Shown here one piece after another: positions 308-44,889 of a DNA stretch of 64,000 nucleotides (its first letter is position 1; every line of letters starts with the position of its first letter). The DNA is from Epithemia pelagica (lineage: Eukaryota; Protista; Bacillariophyta). A model generated the notes under the pieces. It made no database searches and was not told where the DNA came from. It saw nothing but the letters and a program-made list of their open reading frames with translations. The position numbers were made by a program, and so were the translations under genes. The DNA is taken from assembly GCA_946965045.2 (NCBI GenBank), contig OX337241.1, positions 1,116,001-1,180,000 on the forward strand, written 5' to 3'.

Positions 308-1627
308 ATGTTTCTCGCTTATGCATTATGGAATCGATCAAAAACGATCAAGAATCACGAGACAGTTTGTTCGAGAAATGGAACCTCCACCACGACAGCG
401 CCTTCTACAAAAAGGATCCATACAAAGCTACCAGCTTATCGTTACCATTCGGTTCCATCGTTTTATATTTTCGTAACCCTTGTTGGGATTTGCTGTCTTT
501 CCCATTCCTTGTGGTGGAACCGACAATGTTATCATCCTACGATGACCTACATCGAGGGGCCCATCGCCACCACAAACACACCTCAAAGAAAGCACGCAAC
601 ATCCAACTCCACCACTACGTCCAGAAAAGACAATGATACAAATCATTCCACACTTTCATCACCACATTTTTTCATCTCGAGTACAGACACAACGTTTGCA
701 CTGGTTGTTCAGGAACACAACCATGAACACAACCATTCTGTTCTCGTCACCACTAATGACACCACGAAACCAATTCATGCTATGTCGAACTTGAATAACG
801 AAGCCACTGCTCTTGCTTTACCCCTTTCGGATCCGCCAACCCTGGAAACTATATGTGAAAAAAGCAAGCACTCATTCAAGGAAGCCAGTGGTTTGGCTGT
901 GATTGTGACTGGCATGGAACGGTCCGGAACTACCATTGTCTCTCGACTCATCATGTCTCATCCAACCCTCATGGGTGGATTTGAAGGCGGTGTACTGCTG
1001 GGCTCAAGCCCGGCAGACTTTGAACACATACATCCTTTTTATGAATGGATGACGGGTCCCCAATACATGTGGAATTTGACCTCATCCCAACGAAATGAAA
1101 TGGTCCACGGGTCATCCTGTCATGCTGAAATGTACCATACGTTGCGTCAAAAGTCTCCACTCTTTTCTCAAGGTCGACAGCTCAGCAGGCACAAAATGTA
1201 TCTGGTGGATAAGACGCCCCGCTATGTTTACACCTTGCCCACAATAATGGAACGAGCACCTGAAATTCCCGTAGTGGTCATGGAACGAGATTATGAGGAA
1301 CTCGTAGAGGCCTGGGCCCGGCGCGGAGTGAATGAAACAGCCACGCAAGAAAAGCGTAACCAATTCCGGTATAATCTTGAATCTGCACAAACCTTGTATC
1401 CGGATCGTATTCATGTGGTCAACGTGACCCGTTTCTACCAAGATCCGAATCAAGTCATGTCAGAGGTGTTTACCTTTTTGAACTTGACCTGGAATGAAAC
1501 GTATCTGGGTATGGAGGCGTATAATGCCAAGCTTCCACGCAGCTTGCATCAACCGCCCTTTTCGAGTCATTATTATCCTTCGTCAAAAGAGTATAAACCG
1601 GAGAATGAACATGCCCAACCACAATGA
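308..1627 (+). CDS. Sulfotransferase-family protein, probably a type II membrane (Golgi-type) enzyme
   Basis: 439-aa ORF with the PAPS-binding loop VIVTGMERSGTT, LVDKTPRY and VHVVNVTRF-like segments. One hydrophobic stretch (SFYIFVTLVGICCL) is followed by a Thr/His-rich stem. Confidence 0.75.
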   Translation: MFLAYALWNRSKTIKNHETVCSRNGTSTTTAPSTKRIHTKLPAYRYHSVPSFYIFVTLVGICCLSHSLWWNRQCYHPTMTYIEGPIATTNTPQRKHATSNSTTTSRKDNDTNHSTLSSPHFFISSTDTTFALVVQEHNHEHNHSVLVTTNDTTKPIHAMSNLNNEATALALPLSDPPTLETICEKSKHSFKEASGLAVIVTGMERSGTTIVSRLIMSHPTLMGGFEGGVLLGSSPADFEHIHPFYEWMTGPQYMWNLTSSQRNEMVHGSSCHAEMYHTLRQKSPLFSQGRQLSRHKMYLVDKTPRYVYTLPTIMERAPEIPVVVMERDYEELVEAWARRGVNETATQEKRNQFRYNLESAQTLYPDRIHVVNVTRFYQDPNQVMSEVFTFLNLTWNETYLGMEAYNAKLPRSLHQPPFSSHYYPSSKEYKPENEHAQPQ

Positions 1628-2560: not shown

Positions 2561-3937
2561 ATGACTCCTCTTTGTAGGATGATGGCAGATTCTCTTTGCA
2601 CATCATACGGAAACACAAGACTGGATAGCCAGTGTTTACTGCAACGATTGCGATTGCTACTACTACTACAACAACGACGACGACAAGGCGTGTCGCACCC
2701 AAGACTCGGCACAAATGGTCAACGACATTGCTGCTTTGTCACCTGCAATAGTAACCCATCTTCCAATATCCGCAGTGCGAAACATGTGCATGAACGAATG
2801 ACTCAATCTCCCTCGTTCAGCGCCTCTGTCCTTCGTGCGTGGGAAGCAACTGGATTGAAAGAGCTGCTACACCACAATGAGAGAACAATGCCGTCCGATC
2901 AAGATTGTGCTGCTACCTCGTTGCTTCAAGCCCATTTGATGCAAGCATGTCATGGCGTGACGGCCGAGTTGACATTTTACGAAAAGGTTCGAGACGTTTT
3001 GGAGGCAAAAGGAAACTCGAATACCAACATGGTGCCAATGGAATCTTCACTCTTGTATGAATATGAGTCGATCCGAGCGCCTAGCTCAGCCGTTGCCTGT
3101 GTTGCCTTGTTTGGAAACTTTTTTCATACATGTCCGCTCGACCAGAGTCCTTTGCTTTCCAGCAAGACAAGGTATCACAGCGACAAGCGATTTCAAAAGC
3201 TCATGGACTTGTCGTCCTTGATTTCTGGAATTGACAACGACTTGCAATCCTACCAGAAACAAGATGATTCTGATTGGAACAGCATTACCATTCGAACCGT
3301 ATTTGGAGGCAAGACCCTAAGCAACGCCTTTGACGAGGTCTGTCAACGGCACTTTCACTTGGTACAGGCCATGAGAGCACTCGGAAGGCAGCTTCAAGAG
3401 GATTATCCCACCGACTCCAACCATATTGCCGTCTGGGTGAATATCATTCTCCCGAGTGTCCATCGTGGCTTTGTATCTTGGCAATCCCATGTCAAGCGAT
3501 ACAGGAACGAAGGTGACGATGCTACCAATGGCACGTTACTAACAGACAATCTACTAGAACGGCTTTTCCCTGGAGAGCCGTACCACCAAGTTTCACCAGA
3601 GGATGGGACCTTTCCAGGCATGAATGTGGAGTTATATCATTCACTCCATTCGAGTCTCATGGAATGGGCGGCATCTTGTCGACAAATTGGATCGACAGAT
3701 GCGGACAAGTATATTGCGGTTGCCAATCCCGCTTTGTTGGCCTTGTTGTTGTTTCCCTATTGCAATCGGGTAGCAACAGATCTCACACAAGAGGGCCACG
3801 ACGCGCTAATAGTATTTGTCAAGTTCTTTACATTTCTGGCCATTGTGGATGACATGCTCGAGAATCCCCAACTGCACGTGCCTACCAAACACGTCTTTCT
3901 TCAATGCATTGAGTCCATGACCATGGACCATCCATAA
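2561..3937 (+). CDS. Class I (microbial-type) terpene synthase-like protein with permuted motif order
   Basis: Numbering from ORF 2453: YESIR208, N262DLQSYQKQ (NSE-like), RGFVSW343QSHVKRY350 (WxxxxxRY), then FPGMNVELY..EWA..LLALLLFPY..FFTFLAIVD466DMLE (N-terminal helices plus DDxxE). The start codon is uncertain (ATG 2561 or 2798). Confidence 0.8.
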   Translation: MTPLCRMMADSLCTSYGNTRLDSQCLLQRLRLLLLLQQRRRQGVSHPRLGTNGQRHCCFVTCNSNPSSNIRSAKHVHERMTQSPSFSASVLRAWEATGLKELLHHNERTMPSDQDCAATSLLQAHLMQACHGVTAELTFYEKVRDVLEAKGNSNTNMVPMESSLLYEYESIRAPSSAVACVALFGNFFHTCPLDQSPLLSSKTRYHSDKRFQKLMDLSSLISGIDNDLQSYQKQDDSDWNSITIRTVFGGKTLSNAFDEVCQRHFHLVQAMRALGRQLQEDYPTDSNHIAVWVNIILPSVHRGFVSWQSHVKRYRNEGDDATNGTLLTDNLLERLFPGEPYHQVSPEDGTFPGMNVELYHSLHSSLMEWAASCRQIGSTDADKYIAVANPALLALLLFPYCNRVATDLTQEGHDALIVFVKFFTFLAIVDDMLENPQLHVPTKHVFLQCIESMTMDHP

Positions 3938-4120: not shown

Positions 4121-4858
4121 ATGCCGTCAATCAATAAGAGTGGATCCTTCTTCTTCAAGGCAGGCCATACCGCAAGGATAAACGCTCAACCAAGCGAACC
4201 GTTTTCTGTCTTTCTGATAGGACCGTCATCAACGGGAAAGACACATCATATTCAAGAGCTTCAAGAATCTCTCCCAGCCGTCACGAAGGGCGCTGATGTG
4301 ACCTTCCATTTTGGGATTGCCCGTGATTTTCTACAAAAGCGCGGTATCACAGGAAAGGATTTGCTGAATGACAAGAAATTACACATGGAACTACAGGAGT
4401 TTTTGGTTCATAAATACAGTGTTCTTCAGCAAGACCCAGTCAAGTGTGGTAGCACCACCACCTGCCAGAATGTGCATATGCAAGCAAGCACCAGGAATAT
4501 TCGTATTTTCGACCGCTCTGCAATCGACGCCATTGTGTATGCCAAACAATATGGTACGGACCAGGATGCCATGGCGCTGCAAGCTGGGGCAAACTTTCAG
4601 TCCTGTGTAAAGCTCTATCGCAATCCGAAAAGCTCGTTGGTGGTTTTGTTTCCTGTCATACCTCAACTCGTGAAATCCGATGGTATGCGCATCCATGGAG
4701 ATGTCGCTGAACAAAACGCCTTGTTTCGGCAATATGAAAGTACCATGAAAGACCTTGGCATTCCCTTTGTCGTCTTGGGCACAGACTTGAAGCACCGAGG
4801 CAAGTGGTTGCTGTCTCGAATTTGTTCTGGAACTGGACACGATACAGGAATCCATTGA
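4121..4858 (+). CDS. AAA_28/NadR-like P-loop kinase domain protein
   Basis: VFLIGPSSTGKT (Walker A at 4220-4243), IFDRSAIDAIVY, SDGMRI. First in-frame ATG is at 4121; the frame is open from 4031. Confidence 0.75.
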   Translation: MPSINKSGSFFFKAGHTARINAQPSEPFSVFLIGPSSTGKTHHIQELQESLPAVTKGADVTFHFGIARDFLQKRGITGKDLLNDKKLHMELQEFLVHKYSVLQQDPVKCGSTTTCQNVHMQASTRNIRIFDRSAIDAIVYAKQYGTDQDAMALQAGANFQSCVKLYRNPKSSLVVLFPVIPQLVKSDGMRIHGDVAEQNALFRQYESTMKDLGIPFVVLGTDLKHRGKWLLSRICSGTGHDTGIH

Positions 4859-4859
4859 G

Positions 4860-4949
4860 TATTCAACCAATGCTCGTTTCGGAAATTCTCATGACACAGG
4901 AAACCGTTGAGTATTCAATATTCAACCAATGCTTGTTTCGGAATTTCTC
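4860..4949. repeat. Short imperfect direct repeat (31 bp x2)
   Basis: 4860-4890 and 4919-4949 match at 29/31 nt. The repeat lies between two convergent stop codons. Confidence 0.8.
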
Positions 4950-5136: not shown

Positions 5137-8100
5137 TTAGTGCGAACCTAAATCTGACTTGACTGTTTTCAAAATACTGTCATCTTGTGATAGCCACTCC
5201 ATCCAGAGCGAATCTCTCTGTAGCGTATCCTTGCGTCCTATGACAACTAGACCACGCTTTGCCCGTGTCCACATAACGTTCAATCGTCGGTGGTCTTTGA
5301 GGAAACCCAAGTTACTGCGGCAACGAACGGCCGAAAACAGAATGATCGTACGTTCTTGGCCTTGAAAGCCATCAACAGATCGGACATCAATCTGTGTATT
5401 CTTCAAACGATTTTGAATACATTGTACTTGACCAGAATACCCAGTGATGACTCCAATATCTTTCGGTTCGAGGTTCTTAGAATCGAGAAGACGTGATACA
5501 ATATTGACCACTTCCTCCGCTTCTACATGATTGCTCCATGTTGTTCCTATACGCTTTTCTTCTCCGTCCACGTCAACAAACGCAAGGTAATGAGTTCCGC
5601 ACCATGGAGCCTCTTTGATTGGAGCAACACTCTCCAGGCTGTGGTCAGTTCGAACCTTGTCATCGTAGAACTTCAAGGAGGAGAACTTCATCAAAGAAGG
5701 ATGCATACGATATTGAGTATTTAGCATCACGCAAGGAATGTTGCTGTCGTTTTTAAGACGTTCGAACAAACTTTCTTGAAACCCAAACTCTTTGGAAGAT
5801 TCATGCACTGTTGCCTGTAGCTGTTTGTCATCACCGATCAAGACAAAACGTGTCCTTGCCTTACATGTAGCAACTCGGGTATTGCAGCTCGTCAGCTGGC
5901 CTGCTTCATCGACTATCACAGTATTGAATTCGTTATCCTGGCGTAGCAAACCAACTCCCGACCCAGTCGCAGTTGAAAATACAACCCGAGCAGTGGTAAT
6001 AATCTTCTTCATTTCTTTCTGCTTCCATTTTTCGTCATTTTCTTTCAGCGATTCGTGGTACTCAGGAAGAAAGCGTTGCAAAGATGGCTCAACTTGGCCC
6101 GATTCCCCGACACGCACGATCAATGACTCGACGTCCTCGCGATTCAATTTGTGCAATTCGGAAATGAGCTTAGACAGAATATTGTCCACAGCCTGGTGAG
6201 TCGTTGCTGACACAAGAATTCTTTCTTCTCTCGCAAGCAACGCAAGTATGAGACCAACCACCGTAGAACTTTTTCCGACAGCAGGCGGTCCCCAAATGAG
6301 GCTTACTCGATGTTCGATCGCAGATTTGATAGCTTTCGTTTGGGACCCATTCAACTGGGTCCATTTCATTCCACTCCGTGTCTCATCATCATCAATGTCT
6401 TCTAGTGTTCCTGGTTCGACCTGCGGACGACTTGATGCTTCGAACATGACTCGGTGAGTCGTGGCGTTTCCCACCCTCCATACTTTCCAGTCCACACACT
6501 CAACCTCAAAAGGCATCAGACTCAACACCTCAATCTCTAGATGTCCTGCATCGGAAAATTGCTTGACAACGGCATGGAACGATTGGGAAGTGTAGTCTTT
6601 GTGGTTGTTCGCGGGACACATTGCACGAAAAACAAAAACATCTCCGGCACGGATTTTCTTCCAGACGACACTGTGGGAAACGTTGGGGTCAAGTGTGAGG
6701 CCAAAATTCTGTCCTTTGCGTCTCTTGACACTTGCGTAAATCATTATAGGATCTACAGATCTCTTGCCATCCAGATCTAGGCTCTTGTAGTTCTCTTCCA
6801 GCGTACATTGCAAGTCAACAAAAAGTCCCAACACCGATTTGTGTTCATCTTTGTCGAAGGAAGCAAGAACAACCTCACGAATTTCATGCACCCATTGCGA
6901 AACACATGAGGTTAGAGCTAGAAATTCAAGTGTCTCAACCCATTCGTCCGCAGATGCTTCGATGCATTTCTTTACCAATTGAATGGGAAGTTTGGATAAG
7001 TCGGTATGGTTGTGAATAGATCTCAACAAGCATTTCTTGGATTCGGGAGTATTGGGTAAGCATTCACTTATTTGGAGTGCACATGATAACTCGGGTAGTG
7101 CATCAATGTCGATGACAAGTCCTTGCATCTCGAGGAGCAATATCAACGAAACATCGACAGCTACACTGTGCATATGAAACTCTCTGCAGACTTGAATGAA
7201 CTTGTGAAGTTGTCCGTGCTCAAGATGAGGCAATTCAGTTTCCTCGTGGGCCGTTGCAAGCCTATAGAGACAAAGCACATCTTCATATTCATCAGTTTGG
7301 AGAAAATCAGCTTCCAGTTTTACATCGTAAGACCTTGGTGACCCTCCAGCTTCCTCCACTTCCGTTGTGACCACATCTTTGGTTCCAACATTGTAGTGCC
7401 TCACTTCGGGATCCTTGTCGCAGACGACATACATCTCAACACGCTGAAGTCTCCTTTTCGTGACTAGATCAAATTGTGCCTTTGCATTGTTTCCAAGTCG
7501 GCCCAAGTCAATACTAATTCTACCAAACACTTTAGCGTTGACATCGTCCATCTCATAGGGGCATGTCGACATCCAAACAAAAGTATTTCGTGGGTCTCCT
7601 GGACCTTTCATGGAGATCTGGAAAAGTTGGCCAGTTAATGCCAATTGATACTGTCCACCATGAAGACGACTAATGCTCCTGAACGAACCATTAGGATTCG
7701 TGGAGAACACGTGGACGTCTTTATGCAGTATGTTTCTCCCCTCATTGAACTGTTGCTCAAATTGTAGGCAGAGTGTCAGACGGTCGTCGACTTCGATAAC
7801 GAGTAGTTTCCTTGTAAACTGAACCAATGATGAGATAACTGAATTACCAAATGGAGCTCGATAGTCACTCTCCGAACTGTAAACGCGCTTCCAGTTGAAG
7901 GTCTCAGCAAAACGGAAAGCATCGATGTCGTGTTTCTTGAGAATATTCGACTGTAAGATCTCATTTTTAAGCAGACAGTTCAGTTGGGGACACTCTTTCA
8001 GAGCCCACACTCTTTGTGCCTCTGTAAATCCGTGTAGATCAATATGGGCCAGCAATACGCGGTCAATTTCTTCCAAGTTGTCTGAACGAGCTGTTCTCTG

Positions 8101-10068
8101 AATCAAACGCAGCATTTCGAATTGTGATATATTCTGGAAGCGGCTACTCGACGACAGAAGCCAATGCAGAAGCTGTTGAAAATCGGCCTGGTCCCCCTCA
8201 CGCTCAGAGTCCACACAATCATTTTCTGCTCGGAGAAAATCAGTTATCAGGTCGTTTGCAAGATTATCCGCATGACTGATAAGAACTTCAATGATTGATG
8301 GCTTGCTATCATGAGTTTCCTCTGGAAGTTTTTTAAGATCTGAATCAATCTCAATCGGCTGTCCGTCCACACAGCGACTGAAAAGCGCATTAAGTTTGAG
8401 TGCTTCACGACAAGTCGCACCTTTTGCTTTTACCCAATCCAGGTACAAGTTCTTGACTTGGCCAAGGGAAGCATTGTTGAACTTAGCAAAGTAGCGCACC
8501 ATATCAGAACGTTCAATCGTGTGCTCGTTTTGGGGGATTTTAGCCGGTGGATATTTGCATGGCTTGAACTCCGCTGTAGGAATAAGATCGCGATCGAAGA
8601 TGACCATAAATTCATCACCGTCTAGATCTCCACCTGACATCTCGTCAGCATGAGACCGTTGCAGACGATCATTCGTCGAGAACACAACACAGTCTACTAG
8701 ATGATGGAAATCTGGAACATCGACCAGTTTCAGCTTGCGCATATCCCCCGGATGTAGACAGGGGTTACGAGAAACTAGCACATACCCCTCGGTGAGAGTT
8801 AGTGGTAACCCTTCAACAGTGACACGGACGAAGATTTCATCGGTCCTAAGCTTTCTTTCAGGTTCTGCCACCCCCAAAAGGAGGCGTGATTCCGGAAGAA
8901 GAATTCGGACCTTCCGGTTATTTCTCTTGTCAAACGTTTTCTTCAGCTCTCTTTTGACGGCTCCTCGTACCTCGCATCGGGTTGCCCGGAGTCCTTTGTC
9001 CACAAGTTTCTGCATAGCTGGAAACGCTTCTTGGTACGCAAGTAACTGAAACGCAGCTTCAGGGTCCGTAAAGGCCGAGCGAAGAAACTCAAAATGGTTC
9101 TCCTGTTTGGTCAAGAGCGTTTCCTGAGATATTCCCATCTCGGAAAGAAGAGTGACATACTCAGCATTCAGTGCACCAAACGAGTACGGCCTCGAAGCTT
9201 TGATAACGCCAAAAGATGTACTTGAGGATCCTTTGAATTTGCGCATGGAGGGGCGACATTGGACCAAAACGCCTTGTGGTATGTCCTTGTGAAGTGCCAA
9301 CACACCTTTGTAGCCTTGGTACCGAAATTGAATCACACTTGGGTGGTATCTTTCGCCTCGAAACACCACAGGGCTCCAAGACTCATTTTTCGGAATACGC
9401 TTCACAAGCTCTTTGGACATGAGACCACAGCCATCCGTCAGTAACTCTCCCGAGGACGTTAGAATATCATCGATTTCTTGAACTCGATCAGCGTTGACAG
9501 TGATATTGGTCTTTGTTTCAGAAAACAGGAGGGCAATCCGCTTTGTCATTTTCGCGCATGTTTTCATATCGAAATCGCCCATCGCATTGATCAAGGACGT
9601 GATCTCATCGGGGGATCGATTGAGGAGGTAAGCTTTGCCATCCTTTAAACCCGAATTACTGCATCCATAAAAGTGGAAGTGATCAGACCCTGAGAAAAGC
9701 TGTACACCCCACTTCAGCACCCTTTCCTTGAACTGGGATTTTGCTTTGGGTCCCATGTTCTCTCCGTCCCCAAAGCTAAGTTTGATAACTTCATGTGGTT
9801 TCAAGCCTTGAAAAGCACGGCATGAGGGCAATTCGTCGAAAAACTCAACTTTGGGAGGATCATTTGGCGCCGTTAAACTGAACGTCACGAAACGATTCTT
9901 TTGCCGTATGATGCTCAAGTCTTGTCGGCTCAACCCCTCAATCATGAATGGTGGTGGTGGTGGCTTGCGCTTTCCTTGTTTTGGGCGCCAGGAGTTGTTT
10001 CTATGAGACGATTGGTCTCTTGGATTTCGTGCCCGTGGCTTTGCGGATCGAGAGGTTGTTCGTACCAT
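5137..10068 (-). CDS. Cellular RNA-dependent RNA polymerase (RDR/QDE-1 family) fused to a C-terminal SF1 Upf1-like helicase
   Basis: Uninterrupted 1643-aa ORF. RdRP motifs: TDGCGLMS, QFRYQGYKG, RNPCLHPGD, SGGDLDGD (DLDGD at 8614-8628). Helicase motifs: GPPAVGKS, VIVDEAGQ, GDDKQL, SLFERL, LNTQYRMHP, VDGFQGQE, RRLNVMWTRAK. Confidence 0.95.
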   Translation of the reverse strand: MVRTTSRSAKPRARNPRDQSSHRNNSWRPKQGKRKPPPPPFMIEGLSRQDLSIIRQKNRFVTFSLTAPNDPPKVEFFDELPSCRAFQGLKPHEVIKLSFGDGENMGPKAKSQFKERVLKWGVQLFSGSDHFHFYGCSNSGLKDGKAYLLNRSPDEITSLINAMGDFDMKTCAKMTKRIALLFSETKTNITVNADRVQEIDDILTSSGELLTDGCGLMSKELVKRIPKNESWSPVVFRGERYHPSVIQFRYQGYKGVLALHKDIPQGVLVQCRPSMRKFKGSSSTSFGVIKASRPYSFGALNAEYVTLLSEMGISQETLLTKQENHFEFLRSAFTDPEAAFQLLAYQEAFPAMQKLVDKGLRATRCEVRGAVKRELKKTFDKRNNRKVRILLPESRLLLGVAEPERKLRTDEIFVRVTVEGLPLTLTEGYVLVSRNPCLHPGDMRKLKLVDVPDFHHLVDCVVFSTNDRLQRSHADEMSGGDLDGDEFMVIFDRDLIPTAEFKPCKYPPAKIPQNEHTIERSDMVRYFAKFNNASLGQVKNLYLDWVKAKGATCREALKLNALFSRCVDGQPIEIDSDLKKLPEETHDSKPSIIEVLISHADNLANDLITDFLRAENDCVDSEREGDQADFQQLLHWLLSSSSRFQNISQFEMLRLIQRTARSDNLEEIDRVLLAHIDLHGFTEAQRVWALKECPQLNCLLKNEILQSNILKKHDIDAFRFAETFNWKRVYSSESDYRAPFGNSVISSLVQFTRKLLVIEVDDRLTLCLQFEQQFNEGRNILHKDVHVFSTNPNGSFRSISRLHGGQYQLALTGQLFQISMKGPGDPRNTFVWMSTCPYEMDDVNAKVFGRISIDLGRLGNNAKAQFDLVTKRRLQRVEMYVVCDKDPEVRHYNVGTKDVVTTEVEEAGGSPRSYDVKLEADFLQTDEYEDVLCLYRLATAHEETELPHLEHGQLHKFIQVCREFHMHSVAVDVSLILLLEMQGLVIDIDALPELSCALQISECLPNTPESKKCLLRSIHNHTDLSKLPIQLVKKCIEASADEWVETLEFLALTSCVSQWVHEIREVVLASFDKDEHKSVLGLFVDLQCTLEENYKSLDLDGKRSVDPIMIYASVKRRKGQNFGLTLDPNVSHSVVWKKIRAGDVFVFRAMCPANNHKDYTSQSFHAVVKQFSDAGHLEIEVLSLMPFEVECVDWKVWRVGNATTHRVMFEASSRPQVEPGTLEDIDDDETRSGMKWTQLNGSQTKAIKSAIEHRVSLIWGPPAVGKSSTVVGLILALLAREERILVSATTHQAVDNILSKLISELHKLNREDVESLIVRVGESGQVEPSLQRFLPEYHESLKENDEKWKQKEMKKIITTARVVFSTATGSGVGLLRQDNEFNTVIVDEAGQLTSCNTRVATCKARTRFVLIGDDKQLQATVHESSKEFGFQESLFERLKNDSNIPCVMLNTQYRMHPSLMKFSSLKFYDDKVRTDHSLESVAPIKEAPWCGTHYLAFVDVDGEEKRIGTTWSNHVEAEEVVNIVSRLLDSKNLEPKDIGVITGYSGQVQCIQNRLKNTQIDVRSVDGFQGQERTIILFSAVRCRSNLGFLKDHRRLNVMWTRAKRGLVVIGRKDTLQRDSLWMEWLSQDDSILKTVKSDLGSH

Positions 10069-10390
10069 GCTAGCAAGGGTTAATCGAGATGTTTCGTCAA
10101 TGATGGTCTTGATATGGTTTGAGAAAACTGTGCCGTTGTTGGATCACCCGTCTCATAGAAGGGAGTCCGGTTTACGTACTTGAGTGTGTGTCCAACCAAA
10201 GAACGGCATAAAATGTGGCGGATCAAGATTGAAAGTTCACCGAAAAACGCGAAAAATACCACCAACCAGATGGCGAATTAAAATCATCTTGAATCGATCT
10301 GGCGCGCATCGTAGAGCTGTCACGGTTTCGATTGGATGTGACAGGAAAGACTTTTCATCCATTAAGGATGAAAAGTAGAAAGCCAATACC

Positions 10391-12623
10391 ATGGTCCTGA
10401 CAATCCTTTCGGCGACATGGACCAGCGCTGAAAGTGCTGTGGCATTGTCACACGTTACAACAATCTTGGAATCTGCAATGTGCGTGTCGTTGTTCCTGCT
10501 GTGGCTGCCCTGGGCGCACAAGATAGCCTGGTTCTACTACCGCATGGTGGTGGATTCCTATCTCTTTTCCTTTCGAACCGTGTCCGAGGTAGCGGATCGA
10601 GCCTGTCAGGAAGAAACAAGCAATCAGCCCGTCATTCGATTCCCCTATGGACAACGAACGATTGTGTTTTCGAACAAGGACGACGTCGCTTACATTCTTT
10701 CCAATCCCAAGGTGAACAAAAACTACCGAACACGATTTGCCACAGACTTTGGACTCAACATGTTGGGAATGAACAAATCTGGCTTGATCTGGAACAATGA
10801 TTTGGGATCATGGCAAAGCGTCCGCCGGTGCTTTGATCATACCTTGAGTACCAGCACTCTCAACAGGCTCCAGAGCTTTGTCCAAGATCAATTTCCAAAG
10901 ATACTCGATAAAATGCCTCGCGACGAGAATGGAGGGACCATTGACATGTTGGATGCGCTTCGATGGATGACCCTCAACATCACTCTCGATATGATGCTCG
11001 GCTTGCCTGTTGTGGATGAGTGGAACAAGGCTCAAGGAATTCTTGAAGCTATCGTTACCTTTTTCAAAGCCTGGGAGTTCTTTTTGGTTCGTCCATATCT
11101 TGTGTCCGTGCTTCGACCCGGATACCAAAAGCATGCCATGGCAAGGTAGGTTGCTTCTGGACCACGATCATGAGGTCAGCAGACAAGCTGACTCACAACT
11201 ATTTGTTGATTGACCTGTCGTCGGGTTTTCATTCTTGTACAGTCGCCGATTGCATGAGATTAGTGAAGGCTTGTTGTCGGATTACGAAAGACAACGCGAG
11301 CAACATCCCGAGAAAAAGTCACCCTTGTTGGACAAGGCCATGGAAAATACAGAACTTGCTCGAAGCGATCTCGTGCAATTGGTACTGGAATCCTTGTTGG
11401 CTGGAGTGGACACTTCCTCGGTATCGCTGTTTTACACGTTGAGTTTTTTGTCGCAAACCGAGAATCGCGATTTGCTTCGGCAGGCGGTGGAGGAGGTTGA
11501 CACCTTTGTCCACCAAGGCGACAAGATTAAAGCCATGTCCTTGCCGTTCATCCGAGCATGTATCAAGGAAGCCATGAGACTCAAACCTGTCGGACCCATT
11601 ATAATGCGCAAGGCAGCCCAACAGGACAACGTAGGCACCACTATCATCCAGCCCGGCGATTCGATTATTCTGAACCTGGCCCAAATGAATCTCAAGGGTG
11701 TGGATACCACATACGACCCGACTCGGTTCTTGAATGAGGAGGGCCAGCATACACCCGACGCCCAGTTACCCTTTGGATACTTTCCATTTGGCGATGGTCC
11801 CAAAGGATGTGTCGGGAAACACTTTGCCATGTGGGAAATGCAAGCCATGATGCTCGTGCTCTTGTCCCAGTACAGGGTTGATAAAGCAACGTGTTCGGCT
11901 CCGACCAGTGCCATGGTGACGCATTGGGATATTGCGAACCAACCACAATGCAAGGAGGATTCCCAAATGTCCATTGCTCGTCGAAACAACGTGTTTTTGA
12001 TTGGTCCTTCCAGCACTGGGAAAACGACCTTGCTCGAACAACTGCGCAAACAATGGGGGAATACTTCGGCCATTCACTTTCATGAAGAAACGGCACGGCA
12101 GGTATTGAACCAAAAGGGCCTAACGGGTCGTGATTTGATCCAGAATAAAGTGCTTCACATGGAATTACAGCAAGAATTGTTGCAGATGGAATATGCATCG
12201 TTGGAAGACAAGGCACGTCCTGGTACTTTTCACATTTCCGATCGATCGGTGATTGACGCCTTGGTGTATACCAAAGCGCATGGGACGCCCGTAGATGTCG
12301 AGACCTTTAGGAATATGCCCACCTTTCAAGCCTGTGTAGACCTGTATCGCCAGAATTCGTACATGATCCTCTTTCCAGTCCATACCGTGTTGCACGACGA
12401 CGGTATGCGTATCTTGGGCACTCGACAAGAAGAGGAAACATTTTTTGACCTCTTTGAAACAACCTTGCAAGAGCTCCACATTCCCTACCTGGTCCTGGAC
12501 AAGAACTGGGATACGCGTTGTGAGGACGTCTTGCGTCACATTTCATCTTGGTTGGATCATGGCACGAAACATGTGGAAGACGAACTGGCAACCAGGACGA
12601 CCAAGCCTGAAAGCAAGGAATAA
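10391..12623 (+). CDS. Cytochrome P450 (aromatase/CYP19-like) fused to a C-terminal AAA_28 P-loop domain; join(10391..11145,11243..12623), 711 aa
   Basis: A 97-nt GT..AG intron (11146-11242, CTGAC branch-like site) keeps the frame. P450 motifs: WxxxR (WQSVR), I-helix LAGVDTS, ExxR (EAMR), heme loop PFGDGPKGCVG. The same ORF continues into VFLIGPSSTGKT (12003-12026), ISDRSVIDALVY and DDGMR. Confidence 0.92.
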
Positions 12624-13480: not shown

Positions 13481-15208
13481 ATGTCGATAGAAAGAAGGAC
13501 GAGGAGACGAACGAGCAGGGCAATGAGTGGTGGTTCCTGGCTGGTGTTTGTGACATGCTTGGTATCGTCGTGGACGTTGTCCAAGGGCGACATGGCTTCT
13601 GGGTCGTCGTCGTCGACACTGTTGGGAGTGGATGTGAAGGTGACTGCCGAAGCATCCTTGTTATCGTCCTCAGACGCCACGCAACAACAACAACAACAAA
13701 CGAAGGTGGAAGATCCCATGTTGCATCAACATCATCTTCACGATCCCGAAATTGGTGCCAATTTGGACCCTCATCCCGATCCGAATTTGGAAGACTACCA
13801 CGACATGGCCTACATTGGTCGATGGCATCACGAAAGTGGTCATCGAGTTGGATTCGATCAAGACAATGCCTGGCGTTACATTATGGGTACCTCGTTGCAT
13901 CACAATGAATCGCACGTGTCCAACATTCCCGAACACGATTTGCATCATCATGCCGATTACGATGCCTACGGTAACGTGATTCGATTCCATCATCCCGATT
14001 TTCATCATCCCACCAAAACACGAGAACAAGTCTTGCAGGAACGTCGGCATGGCACAGTATCCGCCGATGGCAAACCGAAACGATACGGCCATGTCGATAC
14101 CAATGTCTTGGATGGAGGTGTCACACCACCCAAGGTGGTGGATGTGGACCCCGTCTTTTTGGATGTGGCACCTGTCACCAATAAGGAATTTGCCAAATTT
14201 GTACGATCCACCTATTACGAAACCGAGGCGGAAAAATATGGCTGGTCCTTTGTTTTGCGCACCTTTTTGCCCAATGGCCAAGTTTTGGAGGACAGTGAAG
14301 TCGATCCCGAAGCCGAGCATTGGGTGGCTGTGGAAGGCGCCTATTGGCGACAACCAGAAGGACCGGGATCGTCCTACAAATATCGAGAACATCATCCCGT
14401 CGTTCATGTCAGTCATTTGGATGCGTCCGAATATTGTACCTGGAAAGGCAAGCGATTGCCGGGAGAACGAGAATACGAAGCCGCGGCGCGAGCCACCTAC
14501 TTTGGACCCACCAATCGGACCGTCTATGGATGGTCCCCGAATTCTTCAAACAAGAACAACAAGAATGAATCCGACTGGACCACGGCTTCGCAATCTGCCA
14601 ATTTGTGGGGTTCCTTGCCATTTCCCTACGAAAATGATGCTCAGGATGGTTGGCGGGGCACTTCCCCGGTCAAGACGTATCCACCCAATGAATGGGGGTT
14701 TTACGACATGACGGGCAATGTTTGGGAATGGATGCGAGGCGGCAAACACAAGAGTCGCATTGTTCGAGGGGCCTCGTACATTGATACGATCCTGCCCGAG
14801 AGTGTCGACGATAGCACGACTACTAGTGATCCAGAACAAGAAGAACTCAAGGCACACATTCCTCATCAACACGTGGCCACCTTGGGTGCCCGTGCCACGT
14901 TGCATGGTACCACCACGACGGGCAATGTTGGATTTCGATGTGCCAAGGCACCCAAACGTCGCACCGAATACCACTATGTCTGGCACGATCCCAGTGAAGG
15001 TGGTCCGGCCTTGGCCATCGAAGATCAATTTGGCAAACGCGATCAAATCAAACAACGAGGATGGGAAGATCAATTTGTCGTACATGACGACGACAACGAC
15101 GAGAATGACGCGGAAAATGATGATGATGAATTGGACGACGAGGATGCTCCACGTCGCGTCAAGAAAAAGGTGGTCAAACGTCGGCATCGATATTCCGATG
15201 AACTGTGA
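13481..15208 (+). CDS. Formylglycine-generating-enzyme family protein lacking the catalytic cysteines (SUMF2/pFGE-like), ER-resident
   Basis: VTNKEFAKFV, HPVVHVS, YCTWKGKRLP, YDMTGNVWEW, RGASYID, NVGFRCA. Has a signal-peptide-like N-terminus and ends in SDEL. Confidence 0.85.
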   Translation: MSIERRTRRRTSRAMSGGSWLVFVTCLVSSWTLSKGDMASGSSSSTLLGVDVKVTAEASLLSSSDATQQQQQQTKVEDPMLHQHHLHDPEIGANLDPHPDPNLEDYHDMAYIGRWHHESGHRVGFDQDNAWRYIMGTSLHHNESHVSNIPEHDLHHHADYDAYGNVIRFHHPDFHHPTKTREQVLQERRHGTVSADGKPKRYGHVDTNVLDGGVTPPKVVDVDPVFLDVAPVTNKEFAKFVRSTYYETEAEKYGWSFVLRTFLPNGQVLEDSEVDPEAEHWVAVEGAYWRQPEGPGSSYKYREHHPVVHVSHLDASEYCTWKGKRLPGEREYEAAARATYFGPTNRTVYGWSPNSSNKNNKNESDWTTASQSANLWGSLPFPYENDAQDGWRGTSPVKTYPPNEWGFYDMTGNVWEWMRGGKHKSRIVRGASYIDTILPESVDDSTTTSDPEQEELKAHIPHQHVATLGARATLHGTTTTGNVGFRCAKAPKRRTEYHYVWHDPSEGGPALAIEDQFGKRDQIKQRGWEDQFVVHDDDNDENDAENDDDELDDEDAPRRVKKKVVKRRHRYSDEL

Positions 15209-39260: not shown

Positions 39261-42200
39261 CTAAGAGTGGTGGGGCGGTTGCACCAAGGGTTTGGGACAA
39301 CCAATAGGGCGTGTATGGGGGAGGAGTGTAGGAGGAAGGAATTCGGCAAGAAACGAATTACGGAGTCGAAGTTGTCGTTTTTGTAACGACGCAGAGTCGT
39401 AGATGGCGAGTTGATGTGAGATGTGAGTTGCAAGGCCGATGGCGATAGCATGGCCAAGGGCGATGTGAGAGAAGGTGGACAAGGAGAGATGTTCATGTGG
39501 TGCAGAAGGTGTGGAGGTGCAGGAGGACAAAGGTTTGAAGGGGGGAGAAGGGGAGGTGAGATGCTTTGGGCAATGGGCAAATGTGGGGTAGAGTTCGAAG
39601 GCGTCTGGTTTGGGGGTCGTACGAGGTGAAGAAAGGCCAAGGCGGTCGTCTGGCCATTGTGGAGGTACATTGGGGCCAAAAAGGAAGTGCTGGGAGGAGG
39701 AGGGGTTGTGGAAAAGCAGATTATGGGCGAAATGTCCCAGGCCGCCGAGGTGATCGACAGTGAAAGGGACAAGGGCCATGTGGTGCTGGTTGAGCAGAGA
39801 AGCTGTATGGGCATCTCTTGTGAATTTATGTCGTGCCGCTACATGATGTGCCCTGCTGGCCAATGTGGCGATTTGGGAAAGATCGGGCAGATCGGTTGTA
39901 GAGGGAGAGGGAGGATCAAGTGGTGGGATGGTGACATCAATTGCAATATACGTTAAGTGATGTTGGTTCTCGGTGGGAATGAGTTGAATGCCAACGTCAG
40001 CAGGGCGAATGTTGGAGGAGTGGGCGGGTAGGAGGCCGAGGGGTTCGATGTGAACGTCGTCGGTGGATCGGGTATGACGGCTGTATGGGGCAAGTTGGCG
40101 CAGGATTTGAAAGAGACCATCTCTGATTGTATTGGATGCATGGGTCTTGGGAGCTTTGCGACACGAAAATAGATGGTCGCCGTATGGGTCGGGAGCGTTT
40201 GGTTGTTTGCATTGGCAGTGGTGTGTGTTTGGGAGAAGGGGAAGGCGTAGTTTGCGGTTGAGAATAATGGTGTAAAGGTGGTCGGGGATATGAAATGGGT
40301 GGAAGTGTCGTGGTTGGTGTAAGGCTCTGCTTATGAAAGGGGAGAGAGTGGAGGGAAGAGAAGGGAGTAGGTGGGATGGGAATGTTGCAATCAACCGGGG
40401 GAGGTGTGACTGTTGGATTGTTTGGTCGGTAAGGTTGTTTTGGATGTTATTTGGTAAGTGTTGTAGAAGTTGAGAGACAGGGTCTGTGGATGATGTTGTG
40501 ATGTGAAATGCGGCAAGGGCGTGGAGGAAGGTGTGGAAAAAGGGGAGGTGGGATGCGTGCCAGTCGCGGAATAAGTTGGAGTGGTATGGGGTAAGGGTTG
40601 TTGGTGTGTTTGGTGGGTTTGCGAGGGTGAGTGAACGTGTAATGGTACTGATCAGGGAAGGCAAGGCCATGGTGTGAGCGCTCGGGATGCCGAGGCCACC
40701 GTGGCGTTTGGGAAGGGTAGCGATTAGCAGGGCGTGGGGGGGAAGTGGTTGGTGCTGCTGTGTGGACCGTTGGAGGAAGGTTGTGTGGAGAGTATCAAGG
40801 GCGTGGGTGATAGAGGAGGACCAGTAGGCGTCGAGTTGGTTGGTGGCGGACATAAGAATGTCGGCCCAGAGCAGATGTGAAATGTTGGTGGCGATTGAAA
40901 ATCGGTACATAATGGACCGAGTCTGGGCGTTGGGGAGGAGCATGACTCGCTCTAGATGAGAGGCGGCAGTGGTGAGTCGTTGCATGATGAACGAGTGAAC
41001 GAAGTTGGGATGGCCAATGGGATGGCCTAAAAATCTGATACCGGTGGTGATCTCGGCGGCGGAAGGGTTCTGAGGGTTGAGGAAGGCAAGGGCAGTGGAT
41101 AGAGCGTGGGCGTCAGGGGGTTGCAGGTCTTGGAGTGGGGAGCGGCCAGAGGTAGACGTCATGATTTTTATTTTGGAGAGACTGATGTGGATGCCAAAAG
41201 GGGCGCCACGAGTTTGAAGTTGTGTTAAGAACCATGGAAGGTCTTGAAAGCAGAGACAAATTGATGTATCATCAAGGATGGATGTTGTATGAGCCGTGGC
41301 TCCATGGTCGTCATCCATTGGTTGGTTGTTGTTGCAGCGATTGGTGGCTCTGATTTGAAGGTCGGTGTTGATGGAATCAGTGATGGCTGAAAGGACCAAG
41401 CAAGCAAAAAGGGGGCTAAGAGGGCACCCCTGAGGGAAGCCCTCTTCCTGTAGAAAAGATTGGGGTAGTCGGGATTTGTCGTAGTACCAAGAGGTCGATA
41501 GTTGGGAATGGAGCAAATCGAACAGAGGAATCAGGGGGATTGTGGCAGGTCGCTGTTGGAGAATGAGGCGGCAAGCTTGTCGCGATACCGCATTAAACAT
41601 GTTTGTGAGATCAAGGAGGAGTAGAGCTCGTGTTGGTGTCTGAGGGGAGGTGATGTATTGCTGTAACTGGCAGATGGTGGACTGGATGGCTAAGTCAATG
41701 CCTCCGGACGTTTGAATGCCGAATTGTCCTAGAAGGGGGAGGAAATTGGAAAGGTGTGGGGCGGTGAGATATAGTGCGGCTGTGGCGGAGACGCGGCGGA
41801 GAGCGGTGCCTATGCCTATTGGACGAAGTTTAGAGGGATTTGTCGGGTCTTTATGAAGGGCTAAGAAATAATTTGCGGATACTAGATGGTGGATGGCTGG
41901 TGGGCCCCTTCCTTGGAGGATCAAGTTCAAGAGCGTAGTGAGAGGTTTTAAGAATGGGCAAGGGGATTTTTATTGCCTGTGGCATGATGAAGACCATAAG
42001 CAGCGATACTATCAATGGTGGAGGCAAAAGGGCCTGGCGCAGTGCCCCGTTTGAGTTTGTGCAGGACCGCTATAGTTTGGTTGTGGTTGAGTTGGAGTGG
42101 CGGTGTAGGAGGTGGTTTGTTACGTGTTGAACGTCGGGGTTGGTCGGAGGGAGTGGGAAGGGGAGGAGGCGTGGGCAAAGGGTCTGGATAGAGGGTCGTT

Positions 42201-43035
42201 TTGATGTGTTGAATACTGGTTCTGTGAGGGTGGCTATGGGGAGGGAGGCCGTGAGACGTTTGTAGGCAGTGGAGAAATTGTCGAGCTCGGCGGCGAGACT
42301 CGCCCGTTCGACAGCTTTGTCGTTGTCGGGGGAAGGAACAATGGTTGATGGAGAAAAGTTGCAATTTTGGGACCATGTGGATTCAATTAAGTGTTGGATA
42401 TTTCCTCGTTTAAGATGGGTGATACAAGCTCGGAGCGCTTGATGAGGCGAAGAGTATTCAAGTTTGCTAAATGGTGCAAGTAGGAGAGGCTCCAATACCA
42501 GGAGCAATTTCCAGAACGGGGTGGCATCTTCGGGACTGGGAGAGGTGGAAAGTACTGGCGGAGTGGCGTCAATAGTCCAGTTCACTACGAGGTTGAGAAT
42601 GGTTATGTACTCGGCTTTGGCTTGCGGAGATAAGAGATGCCAAAGGGTAGAACGAGAGGGAGGTGGAGTTGGTTCCCATGTTTGAAGAAAGTCTAGTGAT
42701 GCAGCCTATGCAGCGATGTAGTCGCAAGGCAGATTACGTAATTTGTGCTTTATTAATTGGAGATTAGAGTCTTTACGCTTATGGAATTTGTTCGTATGTT
42801 GGAGAAGATGGGCTTTGTCAAAATAAATAAATTTCGGATCGTTGCATATTGTGCAGGGGAAAAGGGAGGTTTGTTTGCAATAAAGTTCGGACATGTAGGT
42901 GGTTGGAATGTTGGGATGCGCATGCAGGAGGTGTTCACGTATGTGGCGTCGAGGGTGATTTGGAGGGGGAGACCGGAGAGACCAAGAACAAGTGGGACAG
43001 GGACAGGATTGTAGGAGGGATCGCGGGTGGGACAT
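39261..43035 (-). pseudogene. ORF2: C2H2 fingers + reverse transcriptase + CCHC + restriction-like endonuclease; disrupted 5' part, intact 889-aa 3' part
   Basis: CTIC..HTNKFH, TAPGP, LRPIGIG, DLTNMFN, FPQGCPLSP, ILDD, CQC..HLFSC, RPAD, DVT. In-frame TAG at 42706-42708 and frameshifts near 42220 and 41970. Confidence 0.88.
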
Positions 43036-43043
43036 GGCAACCT

Positions 43044-44889
43044 CTAAGTCACAGAGCCCCCTTGGGGCTTTGCGTTTTGAGTTTTGTCTTCCGCGTCCAT
43101 CCTGGCAAGAAGGTCATTAACGAAATCCCAAGTGGTCGCTAGGTCGTTGTCTTGGAAGGTCTGGATTGAAGCCAAATGCTTGATGAGCGCTTCTGTTTTG
43201 GAAGCATCACGTCCATAGACGTGAGCTATAAGTGTGAGAAATTCCTCCATGGTTGCCTGGGACCGAGTTGCCGATGTGATGTTGTGTTGTTGTAGGAGAT
43301 GGATGACTTCGTCTGGGGTGTTGGAAGTGGAAACTCCGTTTCGGCCATTGTTTTGCTACTGGAACTGTAGTGTGATTCATTGGGGGATGCAAAGCGGTTG
43401 TTGTTGTTGCTGTTATTGGACGTTGTAGTAGCAACCGGTTGGGGATTGGGTTGTGCCGGGAGTTTGGTAGTAGTCCAGGATTCATCGGTGTTGTTGTTGT
43501 TGGTGGTGGATTCCGCTGGTGTCATTCGTTTTTTCTGAGGAGGTTCTCGGGTGGGGGACACGATGGGGGTAGTGGCTTGGCGAGGAGTGGGCAAAGCCGG
43601 GTTGGTCCTGGTGATCCTTGCCGCTAAGCGTTGTAAGCGTTGGGTATGATTTTGGTGCTGGTTCATTGGTGGGATGGCGGCTGGGTTGTTGTTTTGTCTT
43701 GGAGGTTGCTGCGGAGTACTAAGCACTGGCGGAGGGAGCAGTTCGGTTGGAAATCCGGGGTAATGATGCAGTTGATTTGCGTCAAGTGTAAAAGTGTCAG
43801 GAGCACTTCTAAGAAACAAGTTGTAGCCGGTTGGTTCAATAGTATGTGCATTGAAGGTAGGAAAAATTCCTTCAAAGACGGGAAGGGTGTATAGTTGTGC
43901 CCAGTCTTGCGGCTTTGGTGGGAGGATGGGTGCCGAAAAGTGGATCACTGTACACCTGGTTTGAAAGTGGTGGTCAATATTCTTGACACTAGTGATACAG
44001 TCTGTGCGTTGGCTTTCGTTGTCGCTTGGAGGGAAAGGGTGTATCTGATAGACAGTCCCGAACCAGGTGAAATCCTGTTCGTTGTCTTGGATGGCGTGGG
44101 TGAAGCGGGAGACTGAACCTAAAAAGGTTTGGAACATGGACTTGGATGAAGCGGAAACTTGAATGACTGGGACGGTAGCTTTTACGCCGCTTTCGAGGGT
44201 TCCGGACATTGTTCCATCACGGAACCCAATGTGGTTTTTAAAGTCATATAAACCGGAGAGATTGGGGGGGGGGGAGGTAAGGGCGGATTTGTTGGTGTAT
44301 GGCTTCCTGTAGATGGATGAAACCTTGCTTGTTCTTGATAGCCATAGCCGGGATGCCTCCGACAATTCCCATGGCCTGAGCATTGGGGTTGTTGCATGCT
44401 GGGAGATAGAGAACCAATTGATGAGCGCGAGGGTCGGTCGTCGGTCCTTTGGGTTGGTTAGGAATTTTGTTGTACTTGAACGGACGAAGGATGATTTGAT
44501 CACCGTGCATGGTTTCTGTGAATTCAGATTTATGATGCTGGTGCCAACGTTGAAGGACAAATCTGATCACTTGATCTTGAAAAATTTCGTAGTCAAACGG
44601 TTTGTTGTTGCAGGCCGGTTTGAAGGCCAGATGGTATATGCTTCGGAAATGGCCATTCCGTGCGGCCGGTTTTTTGGTCTCGATGAATTCTATGCGATGG
44701 ATGGCGATCGCCAAAGGGTGCTCACCTTGTCGTTGTTGATGGTGATGAAGCGTTGCTTCGATCAGATCTTTTAACATGTTGCCCGTCACTGGCGCACGAC
44801 GGATCTCTTCGGACTTCGAGTCATGGTGGAGGTAACCCAGCACATGGAACAACACTGCTGGTTCAGGTTCGCTATGTTTTGGGGTATAG
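43044..44889 (-). pseudogene. ORF1 of the non-LTR element, frameshifted
   Basis: Overlapping track ORFs; one shift is at the 11-G run 44264-44274. The frame is open up to the element edge. Confidence 0.6.

Follow-up and report, generated by a model that had tools for sequence, protein, structure and literature searches.

An aromatase-clan cytochrome P450 continuous with a kinase-like domain in the diatom Epithemia pelagica, and its recurrent RNA polymerase-helicase neighbour

This study describes a gene of the diatom Epithemia pelagica in which a cytochrome P450 related to aromatase (CYP19) runs in frame into a P-loop kinase-like domain, together with the RNA-dependent RNA polymerase (RdRP)-helicase gene that diverges from it. 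The gene occupies positions 10391-12623 of a 64,000-nucleotide stretch of contig OX337241.1, hereafter the window, in whose positions the coordinates are given. Our overall explanation, to which we attach a probability of roughly 0.6, is that a P450 of the CYP19 clan and a kinase domain resembling the ribosylnicotinamide kinase (RNK) domain of NadR constitute an old, scattered protein family that travels with an RdRP-helicase. In the identity of the protein and its membership of a recurrent gene module, taken together, we have very high confidence. The proposed function of the module is stated with considerably more reserve.

The P450-kinase gene consists of two exons, the parts of which are as follows.
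10391-11145, forward strand: exon 1, defined from the open reading frame (ORF) and the sequence, 58% conserved in a second diatom (locus L001); encodes an N-terminal segment and then the N-terminal half of the P450, with substrate-recognition segment (SRS) 1 'GLNMLGMNKSGLIWNN' and 'FFKAWEFFLVRP'
11146-11242, forward strand: intron of 97 nt, GTAGGT...TGTACAG (GT..AG), in phase 2 within a Ser codon
11243-12623, forward strand: exon 2, encoding the remainder of the P450 and the AAA_28 domain, with a TAA stop
11243-11978, forward strand: P450 part of exon 2, with the I-helix motif AGVDTSS, EAMR (ExxR), KPVGPIIMRKA, the heme loop FPFGDGPKGCVG and SRS6 'THWDIANQP'
11979-12623, forward strand: AAA_28 domain, C-terminal tail and TAA, with the Walker A motif at 12003-12026, DRS at residues 585-587 and the LID motif DGMR at 12399-12410

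In the ORF listing, the frame opened at 10391 closes at a TAG codon (11147-11149), and an ORF in another frame reaches the TAA at 12621-12623. Excision of 11146-11242 restores the frame and yields a product of 2136 nt, that is, 711 amino acids plus TAA. The boundary between the P450 and the P-loop domain falls at about residue 497/498 (nt 11978/11979), within the uninterrupted exon 2, and because the junction sits inside one stop-free exon the domain fusion is independent of splicing. These results bear out a preliminary description of this DNA, made from the letters alone, which had proposed a spliced protein of 711 amino acids and an in-frame passage from P450 to P-loop domain: the p450 and AAA_28 families of Pfam are both matched in the single exon-2 product, every motif quoted in that description is present, and GPSSTGKT lies exactly at 12003-12026, where the Walker A motif had been placed.

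Comparison with the second diatom, whose protein is approximately 55% identical, reveals an intron that interrupts the same codon in the same phase (GCA AG|GT ... AG|(C/T)), the sequence of which is unrelated; the two exons are both 54-58% conserved between the window and L001. Allelic variants are found in contigs of four sequencing runs of the same organism, with seven in the 97 nt of the intron versus 29 in 2133 nt of coding sequence, so that variant density in the intron is five times that of the coding sequence. Thirteen of the coding variants are synonymous and 16 are non-synonymous, the latter concentrated at the N-terminus, in a single loop and in the linker. The contigs retain the intron and extend across intergenic DNA, which marks them as genomic and without splice joints. 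The GC content of the locus is like that of the rest of the window. Public annotations of sister assemblies break the gene into pieces of 427 (P0001) and 280 (P0003) amino acids, and L001 is likewise annotated as pieces of 242 and 490. On balance we regard the P450-kinase gene as probably intact and selectively maintained.

The P450 part exhibits the expected signature motifs. The heme-thiolate loop FxxGxxxCxG is present as FPFGDGPKGCVG, with Cys441 (codon 11808-11810) kept in all 38 of the 38 aligned sequences that cover the position, while AGVDTSS at residue 305 and EAMR at residue 361 provide the I-helix and ExxR motifs. The heme ligand, ExxR and the I-helix acid-alcohol pair are present in every member aligned. 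Pfam p450 (PF00067) matches the exon-2 piece with E=3e-36 (125.6 bits, the cut-off being 22.8). No Pfam family is matched at 0.01 by the exon-1 piece; against solved structures its best match is human CYP19A1, residues 91-243 (E=2e-12), followed by CYP46A1 at 0.02. For exon 2, the best solved structure is again aromatase (6e-22), followed by CYP17 (5e-17). Residues 16-40, approximately, are weakly hydrophobic by hydropathy and plausibly form a membrane anchor, in which case the P450 would probably be held at the endoplasmic reticulum (ER).

Three independent lines, a profile, a tree and a fold ranking, place this P450 with aromatase, as the preliminary description had suggested for a non-animal genome, and an exhaustive search does the same. 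A profile built from non-animal members only (A3) scores human CYP19A1 at 332 bits, and the next solved P450s (CYP11A1, CYP17A2, CYP97A3 and CYP3A5) at 147-149 bits. A phmmer search of 1.84 billion representatives, seeded with the amphioxus 'aromatase-like' protein P0011, placed the published amphioxus aromatase (ADU57448) at rank 2 and a fish aromatase at rank 3. In a maximum-likelihood tree of 85 P450 domains (IQ-TREE, LG+C20+F+G4, with ultrafast bootstrap and SH-aLRT), the canonical aromatases and the entire family, the window protein among its members, form a clade of 52 sequences separated from the 33 nearest other P450s with support of 100/99. Within it, the window protein groups with a protein of the chytrid Nowakowskiella (99/92) and with a metagenomic protein (100/100). 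The model of the closest full-length homologue is of high predicted quality (pLDDT 92.8, pTM 0.89), and when it was used to search Swiss-Prot models by fold, ranks 1-23 were all aromatases (1e-27 to 6e-25), the remainder falling at 3e-20 or worse. We are therefore highly confident, jointly with the module described below, that the window P450 belongs to the CYP19 clan and lies outside the CYP19 family.

The latter distinction follows from the nomenclature rule that family membership requires at least 40% amino acid identity to a named CYP19. The window protein shares 29.6-29.8% identity with amphioxus and fish aromatases over approximately 390-400 residues; for comparison, the animal protein P0011, from a module-type gene, is 42% identical to amphioxus CYP19. 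Residues were mapped by HMMER alignment to full-length, 503-residue human aromatase (3eqm) in native numbering. The equivalents of R115, F221, W224, D309, T310 and M374, previously thought to be conserved, proved to be so one by one, and P308 and V370, thought not to be, are V and G, respectively. F134 of aromatase is W in the window protein, and SRS6 is the family-invariant 'THWDIANQP' as against 'KIHDLSLHP' in aromatase. The pocket residues that can be mapped onto aromatase are mainly hydrophobic or aromatic. An aromatase is defined by a three-step oxidation at C19 and aromatization of the A-ring of androgens, and in sequence by the I-helix Pro308 and by V370. With both of these positions replaced and SRS6 diverged, the window protein is, we think, probably not an aromatase, and aromatase activity would not be expected; the initial restraint on this point was apt.

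Turning to the C-terminal domain, Pfam AAA_28 (PF13521) matches the exon-2 product with E=1.3e-21 (78 bits; cut-off 27), and membership of this family is further indicated by the Walker A motif GPSSTGKT and by an Arg-bearing LID, DGMR, which aligns to DGLR of NadR. The ribosylnicotinamide kinase part of TIGR01526 matches the P-loop domain at 5e-10, and the NCBIfam equivalog models score far under the thresholds set for them (39 bits where 341 are required, and 32.5 where 201 are). Among 23 fused or stand-alone homologues that are 16-50% identical, G9, G14, K15, R40, Q64, D88, R89, D141 and R144 are invariant, and S12, T16, E37, A39, D93, Y97 and R180 are nearly so. The AlphaFold2 model of the domain (pLDDT 88.5) has a nucleoside/nucleotide-kinase fold, its best matches in the PDB being NadR bound to nicotinamide riboside (6gyf, 6gye and 8x7f; TM 0.63-0.66), followed by deoxyribonucleoside, deoxyadenosine and thymidylate kinases. 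The order and spacing of the P-loop K, E, Q, (D/E)RS and Arg-rich LID resemble what we take to be the signature of the active site in deoxynucleoside kinases. Sequence and model together suggest that the P-loop domain is most likely an active small-molecule kinase with a nucleoside-like hydroxyl acceptor. As a sole query, the AAA_28 domain retrieved only the window paralogue in a word-index search and only generic AAA_28 clusters in an Atlas search.

The joining of the two domains, which the preliminary description had not recognized from any known protein, is real and is not peculiar to this genome. A first homologue search returned further P450-AAA_28 fusions, the best unfused matches being 'aromatase-like' proteins of sponge and amphioxus. 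The search seeded with P0011 extended the family to crinoids, a sponge, rotifers, a springtail, Glomeromycotina, chytrids, Volvox, Mesostigma, diatoms, a cryptophyte, a diplonemid and an amoebozoan; many of the metagenomic members are fragments. All family members share the motifs 'G.IWNN', 'YFKAWEFFL.RP', 'LLAG(T/V)DTSSV', 'KPVGP' and 'THWDIA.QP'. C-terminal AAA_28 fusions occur in diatoms, chytrids, Glomeromycotina, Stenamoeba (Amoebozoa) and transcriptome assemblies, among them Trinity transcriptomes of other species in which the fused ORFs appear. In the cryptophyte Rhodomonas the order is reversed, with AAA_28 preceding the P450, and in Seminavis and amphioxus the two domains are encoded by separate neighbouring genes. 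A single origin of the C-terminal fusion was considered and rejected, as an approximately unbiased (AU) test refuses one clade of fused forms (p=1e-60); since the fused forms are not one clade, fusion or fission must have occurred repeatedly. In the full-length homologue model the last P450 strand leads directly into kinase beta-1 through a two-residue linker, giving a rigid unit. The P450-AAA_28 proteins are thus a widespread, unstudied family. Names assigned automatically in databases ('aromatase-like', 'NadR/Ttd14 AAA domain-containing protein' and 'nicotinamide riboside kinase') indicate that annotation pipelines had noticed the similarities.

A few individual sequences deserve mention. 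P0080 and P0082 (593 and 627 amino acids, from Logan assemblies) group with the fused P0091 and with Folsomia 'aromatase 2', and carry a C-terminal extension of approximately 160 residues that has neither a Walker A motif nor a Pfam match. The annotation of the rotifer protein P0052 (644 amino acids) joins it to an ASC sodium-channel domain, probably through a gene-model error.

The main new finding concerns the surroundings of the gene, which in the window comprise the following features.
5137-10068, reverse strand: RdRP-helicase partner gene, an intronless ORF of 1643 amino acids encoding an RdRP of eukaryotic type, with the catalytic motif DLDGD, and a Upf1-like superfamily 1 (SF1) helicase
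10069-10390, no strand assigned: intergenic region of 322 bp separating the start codons of the RdRP-helicase and P450-kinase genes, which diverge
4121-4858, forward strand: stand-alone AAA_28 paralogue, convergent with the RdRP-helicase gene; the start ATG at 4121 is inferred

The RdRP-helicase matches the Pfam families RdRP (PF05183; 9e-105), AAA_11 (3e-37) and AAA_12 (4e-52), and about 650 residues between its two domains match no Pfam family. We define the module as a PF05183 RdRP with an AAA_11/AAA_12 helicase immediately beside the P450, with AAA_28 either fused or adjacent. In the window, 322 bp separate the RdRP-helicase from the start of the P450-AAA_28 gene, and the same arrangement of parts is found in ten other lineages, represented by the following loci.
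L001, second diatom: RdRP-helicase adjoins a fused P450
L002, Nowakowskiella: RdRP-helicase adjoins a fused P450
L053, Rhizophlyctis: RdRP-helicase adjoins a fused P450
L052, Diversispora epigaea: tandem instead of head-to-head
L003, L005, L010-12 and L054, four metagenomic or Sequence Read Archive (SRA) lineages: RdRP-helicase adjoins a fused P450
L055, Seminavis robusta: unfused P450 between the RdRP-helicase and a separate AAA_28 gene
L056, Branchiostoma floridae CM022889.1, 19518525-19545740: RdRP-helicase (1788 amino acids), AAA_28 (206 amino acids) and an 'aromatase-like' P450

The RdRP-helicase is thus directly beside the P450 in 11 of 11 informative lineages, the window included, and at none of 38 unrelated control P450 loci from the same scan. 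The head-to-head layout recurs in L001, L002, L003, L005, L010-12, L053, L054 and L055, and the region at 10069-10390 is probably a shared bidirectional promoter. By tblastn, the neighbours are homologous to the window RdRP-helicase along its length. Pairwise identities of RdRP-helicase and P450 correlate over the 11 loci (r=0.50, the pairs being non-independent), and the catalytic motifs of RdRP, helicase, P450 and kinase are intact. The three-part neighbourhood is conserved from diatoms through fungi to amphioxus, a statement that, coupled with the identity of the protein, we make with high confidence. In amphioxus the published aromatase lies outside the module, on another chromosome record (CM022888.1, L057), and the family members of the rotifer Rotaria sordida (L058 and L059) are intronless genes of 491 amino acids, also outside the module, beside ABC-transporter genes.

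The stand-alone AAA_28 protein at 4121-4858 is 38% identical to the fused domain (BLASTP 6e-42), matches Pfam AAA_28 at 9e-15 and is 99% identical to P0012, which is annotated as a gene of its own in another assembly. Such a gene is located at the 3' end of the RdRP-helicase in both diatoms (3199-3837 in L001), and it is a third component of the diatom module. The convergent 3' region between it and the RdRP-helicase gene (4824-4949) also contains two overlapping pairs of direct repeats of 37-43 nt, with 77-89% identity and a spacing of 52-59 nt.

What the module does can be approached through its conserved residues. Each of the six substrate-recognition segments in the P450 shows an unusual degree of conservation, which points to a biosynthetic P450 with one fixed substrate. 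Because of these conserved segments and the invariant active site of the kinase, we infer that P450 and kinase would act successively on one conserved small substrate, with oxygenation followed by phosphorylation or the reverse. The substrate would be nucleoside- or nucleotide-like and would feed or control RNA-templated RNA synthesis, a nucleoside-like compound being preferred because of the nucleoside-kinase fold and the obligate RdRP-helicase partner. This mechanism, with a nucleoside-like substrate linked to the RdRP, is put forward tentatively, at less than even odds. A serious alternative, to judge from the residues of the pocket, is that a lipophilic sterol or terpenoid would be hydroxylated and then phosphorylated.

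A number of considerations weigh against our overall explanation and the mechanism attached to it. The hydrophobic and aromatic character of the P450 pocket would suit a nucleoside no better than a lipophilic substrate, and the NadR/deoxynucleoside kinase fold also occurs in kinases of non-nucleoside small molecules. The rotifer copies, like canonical aromatase, work outside the module, and adjacency could partly reflect transfer as a cassette rather than joint function. The outgroups of the tree are the nearest unnamed P450s, with named clans covered by the PDB and Swiss-Prot rankings only. The substrate and reaction proposed are guesses.

A wider reading can also be drawn, which we consider a speculation with only a modest chance of being correct. 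The three proteins would represent one ancient eukaryotic pathway, either ancestral to the supergroups or repeatedly moved as a cassette, in which a nucleoside modified by the P450 and activated by the kinase (or else a small lipophilic signal) serves or controls RNA-templated RNA synthesis; aromatase would then be a P450 copy that escaped in the chordate stem. Were this true, it would explain the 'non-RNAi' RdRPs of amphioxus. Evidence relevant to the origin of aromatase comes from the tree, in which an animal subclade (100/97) joins sponge sequences, a crinoid and amphioxus-like group, and a group of amphioxus and fish aromatases; the closest sisters of canonical aromatases are there the animal 'aromatase-like' genes (100/97). 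Canonical aromatase has the look of a copy of the module P450 that arose by duplication in chordates and left the module, although the rooting of the tree, and hence this descent, depends on the nearest-P450 outgroups.

Spread as a transferable cassette or selfish unit could by itself be the main reason why RdRP-helicase, P450 and AAA_28 are kept together, in which case their proximity would reveal little of any common biochemical pathway. Such spread would account for the patchy range of the arrangement (diatoms, chytrids, Glomeromycotina, Amoebozoa, a cryptophyte, a diplonemid, a sponge, crinoids and amphioxus; rotifers and Collembola have related copies), for flanking genes that are different in every lineage, and for a nearest named full-length relative of the window protein in the tree that is a chytrid and not an alga; stramenopile and fungal sequences also occur inside the animal beta-RdRP group (Pinzon et al., PMC6396948). 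However, the borders of the unit in the window contain no long direct or inverted terminal repeats, transposase or integrase, its GC content matches the surroundings, and the amphioxus copies have many host-type introns. Order and orientation vary, as in the tandem of Diversispora, with the catalytic motifs all intact, and the repeated, independent fusion and fission of P450 and kinase implied by the AU test (p=1e-60) argues for selection on joint function. Transfer as a unit would, moreover, itself imply cooperating parts, and for these reasons we judge this explanation unlikely.

The preliminary description had favoured an oxidase acting on a steroid or terpenoid, in particular on the product of a neighbouring synthase. 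The genes that bear on this proposal are the following.
308-1627, forward strand: Sulfotransfer_3 ORF (7e-16)
2561-3937, forward strand: terpene synthase-like ORF (Terpene_syn_C_2, 1.7e-6)
13481-15208, forward strand: FGE-sulfatase-like ORF (1e-42)

In its fullest form, the P450-kinase would be the tailoring enzyme of a local terpenoid or sterol cluster, oxidizing and then phosphorylating the product of the synthase at 2561-3937, with the RdRP-helicase as an unrelated insert. The synthase-like ORF lies 6.5 kb upstream of the P450, with the paralogous AAA_28 ORF directly after it, and the sulfotransferase and the FGE-sulfatase-like gene are close by; the steroid-contacting aromatase residues R115, F221, W224 and M374 are kept, and the mapped pocket is hydrophobic. 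Against this, tblastn detected no synthase homologue at L001 (the syntenic diatom locus) or L002 (the chytrid), the two related loci searched for it, and the synthase was accordingly rejected as a conserved partner of the P450. The stand-alone AAA_28 gene of L001 still adjoins the RdRP-helicase without a detectable synthase, nor were sulfotransferase or FGE-sulfatase-like genes detected beside the P450 in L001 or L002. A fusion of synthase and AAA_28 was also discarded: the AAA_28 ORF begins past the synthase stop, an in-frame stop and 120 nt separate the two, no usable donor was seen, and in the sister assembly AAA_28 is a separate gene. The invariant neighbour in 11 lineages is the RdRP-helicase, joined by AAA_28, and not the synthase. 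The steroid or terpenoid proposal is also unsupported because the P-loop fold is nearest to the ribosylnicotinamide kinase domain of NadR, and a local cluster of this kind strikes us as quite unlikely.

It is very unlikely, in our estimation, that the P-loop domain is a nucleotide-binding regulatory or docking module by which a membrane-bound P450-kinase tethers or regulates the RdRP-helicase at the ER. Such a role would make use of the weakly hydrophobic N-terminal segment, which could anchor in the membrane, and of the rigid two-domain model (pTM 0.89); head-to-head genes suggest stoichiometric co-expression, as for subunits of a complex, and the paralogous AAA_28 copies of the diatom module could pair. 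Yet the Walker A Lys/Thr, E..AR, Q, DRS and LID DGxR are invariant across sequences only 16-50% identical, and the heme ligand, ExxR and acid-alcohol pair persist in every member, catalytic residues that a mere tether would not need. Finally, a mis-joined gene model, pseudogene or contaminating contig, for which the genomic nature of the sequencing runs and the split annotations in sister assemblies (P0001, P0003) and in L001 could be cited, is hardly credible, given that both domains lie in one stop-free exon, the intron position and both exons are conserved in L001, exons have fewer variants per nucleotide than the intron, four runs of the same organism contain the locus with allelic variants, the GC content is typical of the window and fused ORFs exist in Trinity transcriptomes of other species.

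Our preferred reading, a CYP19-clan P450 joined to a NadR-RNK-like kinase, can be set against several known systems. Aromatase CYP19A1 (human 3EQM, and the fish and amphioxus CYP19) belongs to the same clan by profile, maximum-likelihood tree and fold, and shares with the window protein the motifs Y..RF...GL..GM..G.I.NN, YF.AW, LE.L.A..DT.SVS, PV...MRKA and PFG.GP.GC.GK. It differs in its approximately 30% identity, in the P308V, V370G and F134W replacements and in SRS6. In addition, the window P450 has a C-terminal kinase and sits in an RdRP-helicase module, as canonical amphioxus aromatase does not. The 'aromatase-like' genes of amphioxus (P0011), crinoids and the sponge Corticium, so named automatically by NCBI, are closer: their products are 36-37% identical to the window protein and possess all family motifs, including THWDIA.QP. 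As in the window, the amphioxus gene is adjoined by AAA_28 and RdRP-helicase genes, but in these animals P450 and kinase are separate, multi-intron genes.

The kinase, for its part, resembles the RNK domain of NadR (6GYF, 1LW7 and 8X7F) in Pfam family, Walker A motif, the LID sequence 'DG.R..G' and fold (TM 0.63-0.66). Its sequence match to NadR is marginal (E 7e-4 to 5e-10) and, unlike in NadR, it is accompanied by neither a nicotinamide mononucleotide (NMN) adenylyltransferase nor a helix-turn-helix domain; deoxynucleoside and thymidylate kinases fit the model almost as well. Self-sufficient or fused P450s (CYP102 BM3, CYP505 and P450-dioxygenase) likewise combine a P450 with a second catalytic domain in one chain, but in those proteins a redox domain or a further oxygenase takes the place that a P-loop kinase has here, and the window P450 presumably still needs a separate reductase.

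In its logic, the module resembles viperin (RSAD2) and the nucleotide kinase CMPK2, which are a neighbouring pair in vertebrates and are fused in some other organisms. There, a nucleotide-altering oxidoreductase is coupled to a nucleotide kinase of thymidylate kinase-like fold, and the two act on RNA-polymerase biology. The likeness lies in the coupling of an oxidoreductase with a kinase; for the window protein a nucleotide substrate is conjecture. The window protein differs in using a P450 and not a radical S-adenosylmethionine (SAM) enzyme, and its partner is a cellular RdRP-helicase and not a viral target. The fission-yeast complex RDRC (Rdp1-Hrr1-Cid12) also brings an RdRP together with a helicase, and the window partner couples a PF05183 RdRP and an SF1 helicase in one protein. 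We know of no described RdRP complex that contains a P450 or a nucleoside-kinase-like protein.

Our search of full-text literature found no paper on a P450-AAA_28 fusion, on non-chordate CYP19-like P450s or on an RdRP/P450 neighbourhood; several of the queries were too broad, and subscription journals and the P450 nomenclature site were outside the search. Published accounts confine clan 19 or CYP19 to chordates (PMC4229089, PMC8110760, PMC5375646), as the preliminary description had correctly stated as background. The distribution reported here, in which clan 19 spans diatoms, green algae, cryptophytes, Amoebozoa, Euglenozoa, fungi, sponges and echinoderms, overturns that chordate-only view. 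The appearance of canonical aromatase as a late offshoot within the animal subclade would supply a concrete ancestor for the enzyme of oestrogen signalling. The preservation of both the P450-kinase architecture and the three-gene neighbourhood between supergroups is very rare in eukaryotes and implies shared function.

These results also bear on the animal RdRPs. Those of amphioxus, one of them with an AAA_12 domain, are conserved and expressed without detectable small interfering RNAs (siRNAs), and a role other than RNA interference (RNAi) has been proposed for them (Pinzon et al., PMC6396948). The RdRP-helicase of the amphioxus module is the published BL02069, which has the AAA_12 domain and whose role was judged 'unrelated to RNAi' in the same work. 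The module thus offers candidate partners for catalytically intact animal RdRPs that have no siRNA role, the question raised by these authors.

Elsewhere in the window, strong local GC skew was observed in the 4-kb bins at 40001-44000 (+0.47) and 56001-60000 (-0.31), unlike the rest of the stretch.

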